64,000 nt of DNA from Blepharisma stoltei ATCC 30299 (taxonomy: Eukaryota; Protista; Ciliophora), in the NCBI GenBank assembly GCA_965603825.1, contig CBFDEM010000040.1, positions 776,864 to 840,863 on the forward strand. The letters run 5' to 3'. Below, one piece after another: positions 39,062 to 64,000 of the stretch. The notes beneath the pieces were generated by a model that did not search any database, had not been told where the DNA came from, and saw only the letters and a list, made by a program, of their open reading frames with translations. The translations under genes were made by a program, and so were the position numbers. Positions within the stretch are counted from its first letter, which is position 1. Every line of letters starts with the position of its first letter.

Positions 39062-39748
39062 TTAAAAACTATCATCATTAGATTTCTTTGCAAGTGGGGT
39101 TTGATTCCTTATCGGCGCAAAAAATTTACTATTCGTTCTTGTAAAAATTCCTGGCAAATCATAAGTCCCCGGTCCAGGGTTTTCATCTCTTGACTGTATC
39201 TTCCCTCTATCTCCAAACCCAAATCCAATTTTTGAAAAATTTGATCTTTCAATCACTTTAAAACTTGGATTATAAGTCCCGGGAGGAGGAACTAAATATT
39301 TTTCCTTCAATTGAATTCTCGGCCTAAATGTAAATTTCGGGCTGTTTTCTCCAATGGGAAGTGACACATTATAAGTCCCAGGTCCTGGCACAAATTTCGT
39401 TTTAATTGGAGTTCTTTCAGCAACAGTCCCAGCACTGAAATTAACTGTCCTTGAATTCATTGTAAACGAACTTGGCGGGTTATATGCTGTGGGTGGCGGC
39501 GAGTCCCTTCCTTTTTCGTTCTTAGGTTCCCATCTTCTACCAAAACCGAATGAAGTGGACCGTTTGGACAAAGATGTAGGCGGAACAATAAAATCAGGAG
39601 TTGTCGCATTTTTTCTGTGCATAAATCGGTCAGCCTTACTGAAACTTCAATGGTAAGAGTCTTTGCCAAGCGTCGTGCTTAGGGCTTCGGCGCTTGGGGA
39701 GGAATTTCGAATTGGCGAGTGAAACTTTGGTTTTAAGTTTTGCTTCAT
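39062..39748 (-). CDS. SHIPPO-1/ODF3-type PGP-repeat ciliary protein
   Basis: Repeats SPPPTAY, PGPGTY, PPPGTY, PGPGTY. ATG 39746-48 is in frame via one TGA. Confidence 0.8.
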
Positions 39749-39766: not shown

Positions 39767-40549
39767 ATGAGCCGGATAGTGACACTGACGACTGATTTTG
39801 GAAATTCTGATTGGTATGTGGGGGCAATGAAAGGTGTCTTATTAAGGATAAACCCAGCTGTGACTATAGTGGATATTACTCATGACGTTCCGCCTCAGGA
39901 TATTATTGCTGGGTCATTTATTTTATTGAATTTCTGTGATTATTATCCTGAAAATACGATTCATGTAGCTATCGTGGATCCTGGAGTTGGGTCAGACAGA
40001 AGACCTATTGCGGTAAGGCTAAGCAACTCTCAGATATTTATTCTTCCAGACAATGGACTCATAAGCTTGTTAATGCTGAGGTATCAAATCATCGAGACTT
40101 ATCTTATAAGTAATCCTGAACTAATGCTGGAAAATACTAGCTTTACTTTTCATGGCCGAGATATTTTTGCTCCTGTTGCGGCACATCTATCAAATGGCGC
40201 CTCATTAGCTAGCGTAGGACCAAATATTTATGATGCAAAAATTTCACCAATAATTAAGCCTGTATTGGCTAAAGATGAAATGACAGGGGAAATTATTTAT
40301 ATTGATCATTACGGAAATTGTGTAACAAATATAAGAGATGAGCTGAAATATCCAGTCGAAGAGATAAGCATTAAGAACCACAAATTTTCATATATAAATC
40401 AAACATATTCAGAGGTAGAGATTGGGTCTCCTTTAATTCTATTCGGAAGTCATCAATTCTTAGAAATTGCAGTTAATCAAGGCAATGCACAGCGTTTATT
40501 AGGCATAAGCAAGCATGATTTGATAACTGTCAAGCTTTTGCTTGATTAG
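39767..40549 (+). CDS. SAM hydroxide adenosyltransferase (DUF62; SAM-dependent halogenase superfamily)
   Basis: TLTTDFG, YVGAMKGV, VDITH, VDPGVGSDRR, PDNG, TFHGRDIFAPVAAHL, IDHYGN, LEIAVNQGNA. Confidence 0.93.
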   Translation: MSRIVTLTTDFGNSDWYVGAMKGVLLRINPAVTIVDITHDVPPQDIIAGSFILLNFCDYYPENTIHVAIVDPGVGSDRRPIAVRLSNSQIFILPDNGLISLLMLRYQIIETYLISNPELMLENTSFTFHGRDIFAPVAAHLSNGASLASVGPNIYDAKISPIIKPVLAKDEMTGEIIYIDHYGNCVTNIRDELKYPVEEISIKNHKFSYINQTYSEVEIGSPLILFGSHQFLEIAVNQGNAQRLLGISKHDLITVKLLLD

Positions 40550-40707: not shown

Positions 40708-43700
40708 ATGCTGGTTCAATTTTTTTTAGTGCTTATAAGATTTGCAGTAGGCTCAGTCCTGCCTATTGGGTTGGTTTACTCATCAAAAACAGATTCAAGT
40801 TTTCTCTCAGCCCTTATTTCAAATCTTGTAGGCCTACAGCTGGAAATTAAAAATACTTTAGAGCTCTCATTCAGCCTCGACGTCAAATTAGAAAGTATAG
40901 ACTGTTCTTTAGCTGAAAGTTCAAGCCCTTACCAAGTTCCTTCATCCTTTTCTGACGCAGGCATCGTAGTGATCATTGACGCTGCCAACTGTCTGGAGTA
41001 TTCTGAATTTTTAGAATATGTTTCAGTTTCAGCAGGCTTTGTTCATATAGTCATTCAAAGATCATATGACGCTTTAAAAGGAGAAATCCTGAATCCTTAT
41101 ACATTCTTTTTAGAAACCAATTATATCACTCAGGCATATGCATTTTTAGACATCATCAAACTTTATGGCTGGAAAAATCTTGGTTTAATCTATGATAATG
41201 CCCCAGAGTCCATGAATTTCGCCAATTCTTTCAAAAGCATCAACCAAAACTCAGGAGCTACAATTAATGATGAAATTATCGTTAACTTAGACGAGCCGAA
41301 CGTCGAATCTTTTTTTGTGTCAAGATTCCAATCCTCAACTTTAAATGCGGGTGCAAGAATTCTTTTGGTGTGCACAAACCCAAGCATTTCAGCACAAGTG
41401 CTAAGGGCTGCCGATTTAAGTGTGATGGGTGGATCAGGATATGCCTATATCTTTTGTAGCAGCGCTATGACTGATTTAGGAGATATAAGCAAAAATTCGT
41501 ATGTAGACACAGATGAAGCAACTTTTGGAGTGCTAAAATCAGGGGCTATTGGATTTCAGGCACTTGATGACCAGCTTTATGATATTAAGCCAATGGCACT
41601 GATAAGATCAATTTTGATTTTAGTTAGTCAAGGGTATCAGAGTCAAGGCTTCCCAGGGGTCAGCATTTCTGCATCGATTCTGGCGACCTACTTATCAAGC
41701 AGTCCAACAATTTCAGACTCAAAATACCAAATTAGTTTGGATAGTAACAGAATGAAGATAAGCTTATATAATATTTATAATATACAGAATTTCAAGGAAT
41801 ACTTAATTGGATCTTGGAGCTACAGCTCAAGGAAAATCAGTTTGACATCTAGCAGTATTGTTTGGCCTGGGTTTAGTTCAACGACACCTAATGATCAAAT
41901 TCCTTTAATCAAGCTTGGGTTTCTATACCCTGGCCATGACACTTCCGGATCTACTTTTACTATCGGAACGACAATAAAAAATGGCTTTGAACTTGGAGTT
42001 GCAACAGTAAATAAAGAAAAAATAATGGGTGACTATCAATTTTCCGTGAATTATGTCGATACAAATATGCTTACAACTCTAGCTGCTTCTAACGTTCAAT
42101 CCTTAACCAGCTACAGCGTAATTGCATTCGTTGGCCCTTACAATACAGACGAAACAGCTGCATATGAAGCTGCCATCTTAACAGCCTCCGACCCAAAGCC
42201 TTTAATTTCTTATGGCTGTGCGTCAGGCAATTTTTCTTCCAAATCCAGCTACCCCAACTTTTTCAGGTCAATCCAAGCTTATGACCTTGAAGGAACCGCG
42301 GTGGCTGTCCTCCTAAGCCAAATAAAATGGAAAAAGATCTGCGTCATTTACACTTTAGATGATTATGGCTCTCAAATGTATAAAAGTCTCGTGAAAAACG
42401 CCCTTTCTCTAGGCATAGAAATAAGGAATAAAGAATCTAAAAGAGGAATCAGGTACAGCGGCGCTGGATCCACAATAACCCAGAAAACCAAAGATGATGT
42501 AGATGATGCGCTTTCCGCTGTTGTAAGAAAGCAATGTAAAGTCATTGTGTATTTGGGAGACTATGGACTTACACCGTATGTAGCGAAAACTGCACATGAG
42601 AAAGAACTTTATGGATCAGACTATGCGTGGATTGGAGCGAGATGGATTAATAGTGATTTGACTGCCTTAGTCACAAAAAGCTATAGTGGCAGCTCATCTA
42701 AAATTTGGGATGTGCTTGAAGGAGCCGTGGGACTTGACTATAGAACCATAATAGGCACTGAAGGGACTGCATTTGCCGCTAATTATACAGCTGCCTACCC
42801 ATCATCAGCCTATACTGTTTACTCCATATATGCATATGATATCGCTTTTTTCCTTGCAAATGCTATAAGCTCTATTGTAGCTGTAGGAGACAACTTCAAT
42901 AGTGGAACCGATTTAATCAGAACCTTACGCGCTGCTGATTTTACAGGGGCAAGCGGGATCTTTAAAGTCATCACAGAAACAAATGACAGGTTTGGGATAG
43001 GCTACTATGTGGTTAACGTGCAGAAAGGAGTCATAAAAAACGTACAAATCTATGACCCTTCTACTTCCGCTGGGTTTATTAGTATTGATGACAATACCAT
43101 TCTGTACCATGACGGCTCTGCAAGTCCTACTGATGACACCTGGTCGACTTATTATGATTGTCCTTTTGCTGAAAAAATGGTCAGCGTTGATAATGCTGGA
43201 GTTGGAATAGTGGTTATGATCGGTGGATTCCTTTTTATAGTCACTCTCATATTAAGTTACTTTGCTTATAAGAAGTGAAAACTTCTAGAAATCCAAGAAA
43301 TCAACGAGCCAGTGCTGCAAAGCTGGAAAGATACATTGGTCTTTATTACAATTGCTATTGAGTTTTGCCAGTTTGTTGCAATTGCTCCGACTTTTCCAGC
43401 ACTGGAGTCTGTGGTCCAAGGCTTCTCTAATGTGTTTATGATTGATGCTTTAAAAGTTTCACACAGCAATAAGCAAGGATTCTGGGCCATGCTAAGCTGT
43501 GTCTGCGCATTATGCATAATTTGGTTTTTAATTATCATTTCAATTATGAGCAACGCTGAGCAATATATCCAAAACAGTGTCCTCTGCCAAAGAATATATG
43601 AACTCATGAACAATTTATATTTGCCGTTTATCGGGAATACCATGTTTTTGCCTTTTATGACCATTTTGCTTGATGTTTTTGTATGTGATCACAAAGCGCA

Positions 43701-44358
43701 AAAAAAAGCATTCGTCTGGAGAGACTGCTATATGAACTGCTGGGGAAGTGAGCATTCGCCTTATATTATAATCTCAGTTATAGCCATGATGTGCTACGAG
43801 CCTCTTGCAGCCTTTTCACGGCCCCTATGACAGCAAGCAAAAACTGGCATGAACATCATGATCACACCTTTCTTTTTACTGTTCAAAACATGCGCCCAGA
43901 TCCTTTTAATTGCTATAGGAAAGTCCTTGCAAGGCACCTCAGTAATTGCTCATGGGGTTGTTTTCTCAATTCTATTTATCGCATTCACCATTGTTACATA
44001 TAAAATGAAGCCTTTTAATTATGGGAGATGCAACTTATGGGAAATGACATCATTAATTGCAGTATGCTATATATCAGTTTTGGCGACTTTGGCAAATGCA
44101 GGGGATTCTAAACATATTGCCTGGTTCGTGACACTTGCGGCAGGATGGGCAATTATGGTAATTGTAGCGGTTTTTATTCAAAAGAGACATTTTCCGAATT
44201 ATTTGACTTCGACGGGGTCTAGGGGGAAAAGAAAAATATATGATGCGATTATTGTGAGGAAAGGAAGTCAACTGGATTCTGTGGATCTGGACAACTCCAA
44301 TGTGGTTGAAGACCAGCAAGCCCCGACTCCTATGGGAGCTTCTCAAATAAATATATAA
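40708..44358 (+). CDS. Receptor-like protein: signal peptide, two Venus-flytrap (ANF-receptor type) domains and ~9 TM helices, 1216 aa
   Basis: IAFVGPY, LISYGCAS...YPNFFRS, WKKICVIYTLDDYG, YAYD, FTGASG. ORFs joined by TGA at 43276 and 43828. Confidence 0.8.
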
Positions 44359-63272: not shown

Positions 63273-64000
63273 TGTTAGGGTGTTAGGGTGTTAGGGTGTT
63301 AGGGTGTTAGGGTGTTAGGGTGTTAGGGTGTTAGGGTGTTAGGGTGTTAGGGTGTTAGGGTGTTAGGGTGTTAGGGTGTTAGGGTGTTAGGGTGTTAGGG
63401 TGTTAGGGTGTTAGGGTGTTAGGGTGTTAGGGTGTTAGGGTGTTAGGGTGTTAGGGTGTTAGGGTGTTAGGGTGTTAGGGTGTTAGGGTGTTAGGGTGTT
63501 AGGGTGTTAGGGTGTTAGGGTGTTAGGGTGTTAGGGTGTGTTAGGGTGTTAGGGTGTTAGGGTGTTAGGGTGTTAGGGTGTTAGGGTGTTAGGGTGTTAG
63601 GGTGTTAGGGTGTTAGGGTGTTAGGGTGTTAGGGTGTTAGGGTGTTAGGGTGTTAGGGTGTTAGGGTGTTAGGGTGTTAGGGTGTTAGGGTGTTAGGGTG
63701 TTAGGGTGTTAGGGTGTTAGGGTGTTAGGGTGTTAGGGTGTTAGGGTGTTAGGGTGTTAGGGTGTTAGGGTGTTAGGGTGTTAGGGTGTTAGGGTGTTAG
63801 GGTGTTAGGGTGTTAGGGTGTTAGGGTGTTAGGGTGTTAGGGTGTTAGGGTGTTAGGGTGTTAGGGTGTTAGGGTGTTAGGGTGTTAGGGTGTTAGGGTG
63901 TTAGGGTGTTAGGGTGTTAGGGTGTTAGGGTGTTAGGGTGTTAGGGTGTTAGGGTGTTAGGGTGTTAGGGTGTTAGGGTGTTAGGGTGTTAGGGTGTTAG
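63273..64000 (+). repeat. Telomere (TGTTAGGG)n = (CCCTAACA)n
   Basis: About 728 bp of octamer repeats to the window end, with one variant carrying an extra TG near 63539-40. Confidence 0.98.

Follow-up and report, generated by a model that had tools for sequence, protein, structure and literature searches.

A predicted DUF62-type S-adenosyl-L-methionine hydrolase gene, most economically read as bacterial in origin, in the heterotrich ciliates Blepharisma and Stentor

The DNA analysed here (hereafter the window, meaning the whole stretch of 64,000 nucleotides) comes from the ciliate Blepharisma stoltei ATCC 30299 (contig CBFDEM010000040.1, positions 776,864 to 840,863 of the forward strand) and carries, at 39767..40549 on the plus strand, the coding sequence of a predicted DUF62-type S-adenosyl-L-methionine (SAM) hydrolase, or SAM hydroxide adenosyltransferase. 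A reading made earlier from the letters of this stretch without database searches (the sequence-only reading) had placed exactly here an intact open reading frame (ORF) of 260 amino acids with the motifs of the family. This was confirmed by the ORF list, by Pfam and by inspection of the start and stop codons, which showed a complete, intronless coding sequence running from an ATG to a TAG stop and encoding 260 amino acids. Since a TAA triplet lies five codons 5′ of the ATG and no in-frame ATG occurs earlier, the start is unambiguous. In the macronuclear genome of B. stoltei (41 Mbp, 64 telomere-to-telomere contigs) the heterotrich introns are 15–16 bp long, UGA is read as Trp and the telomere repeat is CCCTAACA (PMC9942806). 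Neither an in-frame TGA nor a 15–16-nt intron-like element of the type GTA...TAG was found within the hydrolase ORF. Searching the organism's own genome (41,464,486 bp in 64 contigs) revealed one copy of the gene. An identical protein entry is present in NCBI, UniRef and nr, and the protein remains a singleton when clustered at 90% identity.

Hidden Markov model (HMM) searches identified the two domains of the family in order, both over the Pfam gathering scores and with near-complete coverage of the profiles, i.e. essentially at full length. SAM_HAT_N (PF01887) occupies residues 5–151 (39779..40219, plus strand; E 2.1e-55, 187 bits against a cut-off of 26.3, positions 1–145 of the 145 in the profile), and SAM_HAT_C (PF20257) occupies residues 174–253 (40286..40525, plus strand; E 2.7e-25, 88.9 bits against a cut-off of 25.5, positions 1–83 of 84). 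In SAM hydroxide adenosyltransferases water is activated by an Asp-Arg-His triad (D68, R75 and H127 in PH0463) that is absent from the halogenases of the superfamily (PMC4859513; PMC10491745). Alignments placed this triad at Asp71 (codon 39977..39979, equivalent to D68), Arg78 (39998..40000, R75) and His129, within TFHGRD (40151..40153, H127), all on the plus strand, whereas the solved chlorinase 7xto carries Tyr, Thr and Tyr, respectively, at these positions. D71, R78 and H129 were found without exception in the 27 homologues aligned, and the triad together with the other catalytic positions was invariant in the ciliate-type copies with DNA (7 out of 7) and in the aligned proteins of the ciliate clade described below (10 out of 10). 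The N-terminal Asp of TDFG, PxNGL and ID..GN have been named as the substrate-binding motifs of the superfamily (PMC4859513). All three are present in the Blepharisma protein, as D10, P94-D-N-G-L98 and I179-D-H-Y-G-N184, and the residues D10, P94, N96, D180, G183 and N184 are unchanged across the 27 homologues and the ten ciliate-clade copies. Within the last motif, residue 182 (nt 40310–40312) is Tyr in Blepharisma and Phe in the other nine aligned ciliate-clade copies and in the bacterial neighbours that were checked; this Phe to Tyr replacement is conservative.

One question is whether the protein might instead be a SAM-dependent halogenase (chlorinase or fluorinase) serving a secondary-metabolite pathway of the ciliate. 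The halogenases belong to the same superfamily, and the automatic name given in UniRef to the orthologue from Stentor coeruleus is 'SAM-dependent chlorinase/fluorinase'. However, the triad is intact, as the sequence-only reading had pointed out when it predicted a hydrolase rather than a halogenase, and the alignment with PH0463 bears out that prediction; its further statement that halogenases have Tyr at the position of the His holds for 7xto. The published halide ligands (Y70 and G131 in SalL, T80 and S158 in the fluorinase) also argue against halogenation, and F128 of the Blepharisma protein stands opposite a Trp in the 7xto alignment. The fluorinase model of NCBIfam (TIGR04507) gave 88.5 bits, far from its cut-off of 400. 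Comparison with the PDB pointed in the same direction: the closest matches were of hydrolase type (2zbu, E 1.7e-49; PH0463, about 1e-48 to 3e-48), and those to the SalL chlorinase (E 5.6e-33) and the fluorinases (about 1e-25) were weaker, the corresponding scores being 172 bits for hydrolases, 118–123 for chlorinases and 90–94 for fluorinases. In addition, no biosynthetic genes adjoin the hydrolase gene and its neighbours differ between lineages, so that the role in secondary metabolism once suggested for it is left unsupported. A halogenase is, hence, very improbable, and the evidence supports the assignment of the protein as a DUF62-type SAM hydrolase. On the basis of family membership and of the triad, the predicted reaction is SAM + water → adenosine + methionine.

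The structure model of the protein in the Atlas is confident (predicted template modelling score, pTM, 0.90), and its superposition with bacterial members of the family gave a template modelling (TM) score of 0.95. When three copies were modelled as a complex, the interface score ipSAE reached 0.95 against 0.00 for the best control, with a contact agreement of at least 97% and a predicted local distance difference test (pLDDT) of at least 92. In the modelled interface residues 72–76 and 125–131 of one chain face residues 180–182, 212–215 and 237–240 of the next, as the family predicts. When the complex tool was calibrated on microbial proteins, 20 of 30 that had been solved as same-chain pairs attained the pass mark, compared with 1 of 23 that had been solved as single chains; these counts apply only roughly here because a custom alignment and three copies were used. 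Since trimers of relatives have already been solved, the prediction is to be taken as a likeness and not as independent proof. The protein is thus predicted to be homotrimeric, with its active sites at the subunit interfaces, as in the rest of the family.

The gene is flanked by clearly eukaryotic genes. Upstream, and divergent from it across a 144-bp spacer, the ORF list contains a SHIPPO (sperm-tail PG-rich) repeat protein of 186 amino acids (39062..39622, minus strand; PF07004, E 3.6e-12). Downstream, at a distance of 158 bp, Pfam identified an ANF_receptor-domain protein (40708..44358, plus strand), whose frame of 1216 amino acids reaches 44358 only if TGA, which occurs in it twice in frame, is translated (as Trp, according to the Blepharisma code); under translation table 11 it ends at 43278. 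In-frame TGA also occurs in most long ORFs of the window. The downstream protein contains two ANF_receptor/periplasmic-binding regions, and an ANF_receptor gene is likewise located a few kb from the SAM hydrolase gene on the Stentor-type contig L088. The end of the window (approximately 63273..64000, plus strand) consists of about 90 units of the telomere (GGGTGTTA)n, a permutation of the heterotrich repeat CCCTAACA, about 23 kb from the hydrolase gene. With respect to composition, the hydrolase gene has a GC content of 0.365 (0.362 ± 0.028 in 24 long host ORFs), a GC content at third codon positions (GC3) of 0.292 (0.316 ± 0.039), and a correlation of relative synonymous codon usage (RSCU) with the host ORFs of 0.78, the host mean being 0.715.

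These data bear on the possibility of bacterial contamination, of a misassembly or of a very recent transfer into Blepharisma alone, which draws on the fact that the best matches of the single sequence look bacterial at about 50% identity. Against it, the contig is telomere-capped and carries the gene in its interior, the neighbour only 158 bp away uses in-frame UGA for Trp, and the composition and codon usage of the gene are those of its host; the eukaryotic flanks, the telomere and the improbability of contamination that had been claimed from the letters alone all stood up. Moreover, identity to the protein does not exceed 52% in any bacterial sequence, and orthologues occur in eukaryotic neighbourhoods of independent Stentor and uncultured heterotrich assemblies (see below). 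The hydrolase gene is therefore a resident gene of a ciliate (macronuclear) chromosome. Contamination is excluded, and the probability of this explanation as a whole is negligible.

The search with the single Blepharisma sequence, which yielded the bacterial-looking matches of about 50% identity, at first suggested a gene found only in Blepharisma. This impression was dropped because the contigs of P0005 and P0007, the tree neighbours of the Blepharisma protein, turned out to have eukaryotic contexts: they carry genes for protein kinases, Kelch, zf-UBP+UCH, sugar transporters, ANF_receptor and zf-MYND proteins, and the P0007 contig (L090) terminates in (TGTTAGGG)n, which is the heterotrich telomere. 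P0002, P0009 and P0004 are bacterial and adjoin IMPDH, acyl-CoA dehydrogenase, MCP and response-regulator genes. A profile made from P0005/P0007-type sequences and searched against 5.8 billion clusters retrieved further members at 342–493 bits, the bacterial plateau beginning at 306 bits. Among them was the Stentor coeruleus orthologue SteCoe_12095, already public in NCBI and UniRef as a hypothetical protein and encoded on the 82-kb contig MPUH01000207.1 (GCA_001970955.1), where it is flanked by a GH18 gene and kinases. About 10 metagenomic homologues were found, and the five that were checked, from four lineages, all lay on eukaryote contigs; P0127, for example, adjoins ODAD1, kinase, sugar transporter and granulin genes. 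Hence, contrary to what had been assumed, the gene is not confined to this ciliate: S. coeruleus and several uncultured heterotrich-type ciliates also have it. The ciliate copies are mutually 42–53% identical, and in the searches made bacterial sequences were at most 52% identical to the Blepharisma protein.

When 1.84 billion representatives were searched exhaustively with HMMER, 13,743 proved to be members of the family, with only P0005, P0003 and P0204 above the prokaryote plateau. The P0204 contig is eukaryotic and very compact, with genes for 14-3-3, two dynein chains, DHHC, ArfGap and Bax1-I proteins, and TGA is not used for any of its 19 called stops. The cytidylyltransferase beside P0204 has its best named matches in B. 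stoltei (43%) and then in S. coeruleus (36%), for which reason the host of P0204 is read as a further heterotrich, closer to Blepharisma than to Stentor. The score of P0210 lay within the plateau; this protein is probably from a ciliate too, since both of its neighbours have full-length Blepharisma homologues (E 9e-79 and 8.5e-87), and its score means that members of the clade can hide in the plateau.

Several features of these loci were recorded along with the searches. The contig L095 (ENA ERZ27241910 k141_457396, 231.8 kb), with L096, is of heterotrich type and extremely compact (coding about 84%, many spacers of 10–20 bp); its stops are TAA in 15 cases, TAG in four and TGA in none, which fits a code with UGA as sense, as in Blepharisma. 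In the database proteins P0003 (residues 1–73), P0007 (1–80) and P0123 (1–14) an N-terminal hydrophobic extension precedes the family sequence. These extensions were rejected as artefacts of prokaryotic gene callers, a conserved Met being present downstream at the family start. In most Stentor-type contigs a conserved ORF of 271–300 amino acids is located 3′ of the hydrolase gene (L088:8784-9599, L090:9017-9859, L093:2188-3003, L003:1258-2079 and L092:9161-10063), with a gap of 0–20 bp, sometimes with overlapping stop and start codons, and of about 380 bp in L092. It gives weak matches to IF3_N (E 2.5e-4) and IF3_C (E 0.01) and may encode a mitochondrial IF3-like protein; no counterpart adjoins the hydrolase gene in the Blepharisma or the S. 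coeruleus contig. Apart from the hydrolase gene itself, no synteny was found between the window and the other ciliate loci.

In order to place the ciliate proteins, careful trees were built with IQ-TREE under site-heterogeneous models (LG+C20+F+G4 with posterior mean site frequencies, PMSF, for the tree of 73 rows); all trees are unrooted. In the 73-row tree the ten ciliate sequences formed one clade (ultrafast bootstrap, UFBoot, 99; Shimodaira-Hasegawa-like approximate likelihood ratio test, SH-aLRT, 85), which was joined to one AT-rich bacterial group at 98/94. After the addition of P0204, P0210 and more representatives, a careful tree of 42 rows again united all 12 sequences of eukaryotic context (96/85), split into the Blepharisma protein with P0204 and P0210 (96/82) on one side and nine Stentor-type sequences on the other. 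This split agrees with the organismal relationship that would be expected. In these trees the ciliate clade lies inside bacterial and archaeal diversity. One of the representatives near the ciliate group is from Sulfidibacter corallicola (Acidobacteriota). In the closest bacterial group (GC 27–40%) a conserved gene for 658–670 amino acids with a weak DUF748 match lies 3′ of the hydrolase gene in three contigs (L002:1054-3066, L087:6026-8008 and the P0008 contig), but not in L086, the P0009 contig; this conservation suggests that the bacteria of the group are related to one another. The ratio of nonsynonymous to synonymous substitution rates (dN/dS) was 0.13 in two unsaturated ciliate pairs, and these codon comparisons show the gene to be under purifying selection within the ciliates.

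The same data were used to weigh whether the gene could go back to early eukaryotes, or belong to ciliates as a whole, and have come down by vertical descent with losses in almost all other lineages and no bacterial transfer at all. The gene is certainly old, since the ciliate copies are only 42–53% identical and form one clade, and this explanation gains some room from the unrooted trees and from the fact that other eukaryotes were seen through ranked lists and not taxon by taxon. However, with the ciliate-clade profile only sequences of heterotrich context rose above the plateau, both in the 1.84 billion representatives and in the 5.8 billion clusters. Tetrahymena, Paramecium, Oxytricha and other eukaryotes gave no named match in the ranked lists, no taxon-by-taxon survey having been made. 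Sequences of bacteria and archaea surround the clade in the tree, its bacterial sister group being recovered at 98/94, and the literature regards the family as bacterial and archaeal. Of the vertical distribution in eukaryotes that the sequence-only reading had opposed to its proposal, descent within one ciliate class was found, and none was seen in other eukaryotes. Vertical descent from an ancient eukaryotic gene is thus improbable. The horizontal acquisition first proposed from the letters alone is supported, in that the transfer of a bacterial gene is the most economical reading. Because the gene is common to Stentor and several uncultured heterotrich-type ciliates, all in one clade, the transfer was most likely ancient and followed by vertical inheritance within the Heterotrichea. 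We infer both its direction and its date.

Taken together, the results lead us to a reading that we hold with fair, though not full, confidence: a functional SAM hydrolase of heterotrichs, derived from one ancient bacterial transfer and passed on vertically under selection, whose most probable job is the clearance of (R,S)-SAM. We infer the hydrolase activity, the stereoselectivity and the physiological role from sequence. The proposed course of events is as follows. A bacterium would have passed the gene, in a single event, to an ancestor shared by the Blepharisma and Stentor lineages, after which vertical descent under purifying selection would have followed. The product of the gene would form a homotrimer, as the analogy with PH0463 and StDUF62 suggests, in which each active site is located where the N-domain of a subunit meets the C-domain of its neighbour. 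There Asp71-Arg78-His129 would activate water for an SN2 attack on C5′ of SAM, giving adenosine and L-methionine. The reaction would serve damage control, in that the (R,S) epimer of SAM, which is inactive and forms spontaneously, would be cleared from the cell. Such repair would be most important in giant, slowly dividing cells that have no stand-alone homocysteine S-methyltransferase, since in them a spontaneous damage product would be poorly diluted.

The DUF62 enzymes of bacteria and archaea for which stereochemistry has been tested all prefer (R,S)-SAM (PMC12120602 and the archaeal SamH preprint). The known eukaryotic route is the (R,S)-SAM-specific methylation of homocysteine, for which work on yeast Mht1/Sam4 is cited (PMC12120602). 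The domain of the enzymes of that route (PF02574, S-methyl_trans) was found only once in the Blepharisma genome (G000:C53:147417-148337), inside a MetH-like ORF of 1229 amino acids, and no stand-alone homocysteine S-methyltransferase was detected in this genome. A further step would be that heterotrichs handle epimerised (R,S)-SAM in the bacterial way, the acquired DUF62 hydrolase replacing the homocysteine S-methyltransferase route; we offer this only as a tentative and rather doubtful possibility. The protein could also be a true SAM hydrolase with another job, such as the control of the SAM pool or methylation potential, the salvage of methionine and adenosine, or action on a related sulfonium substrate. 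Hydrolysis has been called a wasteful form of repair, and StDUF62 is inhibited by salt and turned to (S,S)-SAM once (R,S)-SAM was exhausted (PMC12120602). According to the discussion of the preprint, deletion of the archaeal samh gene had no direct phenotype. On the other hand, the preference for (R,S)-SAM of every DUF62 enzyme tested for stereochemistry, the cost of an uncontrolled hydrolysis of (S,S)-SAM and the lack of the usual eukaryotic (R,S)-SAM route as a stand-alone enzyme in the Blepharisma genome make another job the less likely choice, to which we give a limited chance, much greater than that of a halogenase.

Several points weigh against the reading of an anciently acquired (R,S)-SAM hydrolase. 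The two top NCBIfam models are both '(R)-S-adenosyl-L-methionine hydrolase' equivalogs, and both cut-offs were missed (NF058624, 201 bits against 350; NF053629, 188.9 against 470), so that the function is set at the level of the family only. It has been doubted whether hydrolysis of (R,S)-SAM is the true function of DUF62 proteins (PMC12120602). The pass obtained for the trimer may merely mirror the solved relatives. With more representatives the quick tree and a FastTree of 166 rows were less resolved, and FastTree pulls the bacterial pair P0011/P0215 (Acidobacteriota) into the ciliate group; more weight was given to the careful site-heterogeneous trees than to these. The trees are unrooted. 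Named prokaryote relatives (39–46% identity) come from many phyla, among them Bacteroidota, Latescibacterota, KSB1, Planctomycetota, Poribacteria and Bathyarchaeia, and point to no particular donor. As the nearest bacterial group is AT-rich like the ciliate sequences, compositional attraction may have contributed to their grouping. Finally, absence from other eukaryotes means 'not seen' in ranked lists.

In the literature DUF62 proteins are described as bacterial and archaeal, and a contrast is drawn between their hydrolysis of (R,S)-SAM and the homocysteine methyltransferases as 'the eukaryotic mechanism'; a search of one literature library found no paper on a eukaryotic DUF62 member or on a hydrolase gene of this kind in ciliates. 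Here, a whole ciliate class has apparently kept a DUF62 enzyme under purifying selection since before the divergence of Blepharisma and Stentor, which adds an old, clean, single-gene example to the record of transfers from bacteria to ciliates. RNA interference is workable in both Stentor and Blepharisma. If the proposed function is true, heterotrichs would be the first eukaryotes with a hydrolytic strategy of (R,S)-SAM repair, and their giant cells would offer an interference-amenable system for settling the contested role of DUF62 in vivo.

As comparison with the known systems makes clear, what is unusual here is the host clade, whereas the protein itself is a typical DUF62 hydrolase and no novel type of enzyme. 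The SAM hydroxide adenosyltransferase PH0463 of Pyrococcus horikoshii (PDB 1wu8, 2wr8), with which the DUF62 mechanism was established, aligns with it over the full length and has the same two-domain layout, the Asp-Arg-His triad, the motifs PDNGL, TFHGRD and ID..GN, and a trimer with inter-subunit active sites, which in the Blepharisma protein is predicted. They differ in that PH0463 is archaeal, thermophilic and well under 50% identical, whereas the host of the window protein is a mesophilic eukaryote; Tyr182, where most homologues carry the Phe of ID.FGN, is also particular to the latter. StDUF62 of Salinispora tropica and the SamH proteins of Sulfolobus and Haloferax are (R,S)-SAM-specific hydrolases of the same family. 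However, assays exist only for bacterial and archaeal members and the Blepharisma protein falls below both equivalog cut-offs, so that their stereoselectivity is not transferable to it by rule.

SteCoe_12095, the orthologue in the sister heterotrich lineage, resembles the Blepharisma gene in its length (258 amino acids), its lack of introns, its triad and its place in the same clade, but is only 42–45% identical, has GH18 and kinase genes as neighbours and belongs to a genome with the standard genetic code. SalL, the chlorinase 7xto and the FlA fluorinase share with the Blepharisma protein the superfamily, the fold and, by family, the SN2 adenosyl transfer from SAM. Unlike it, they do not have the triad (Y, T and Y in 7xto), exclude water and are far weaker matches. 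Yeast Mht1/Sam4 and the homocysteine S-methyltransferases of plants and animals are presumed to do the same job, that of stopping the build-up of (R,S)-SAM, but their fold (PF02574) is unrelated and they recycle the methyl group, whereas the heterotrich enzyme, which is encoded in a Blepharisma genome with no stand-alone copy of them, would hydrolyse the epimer.

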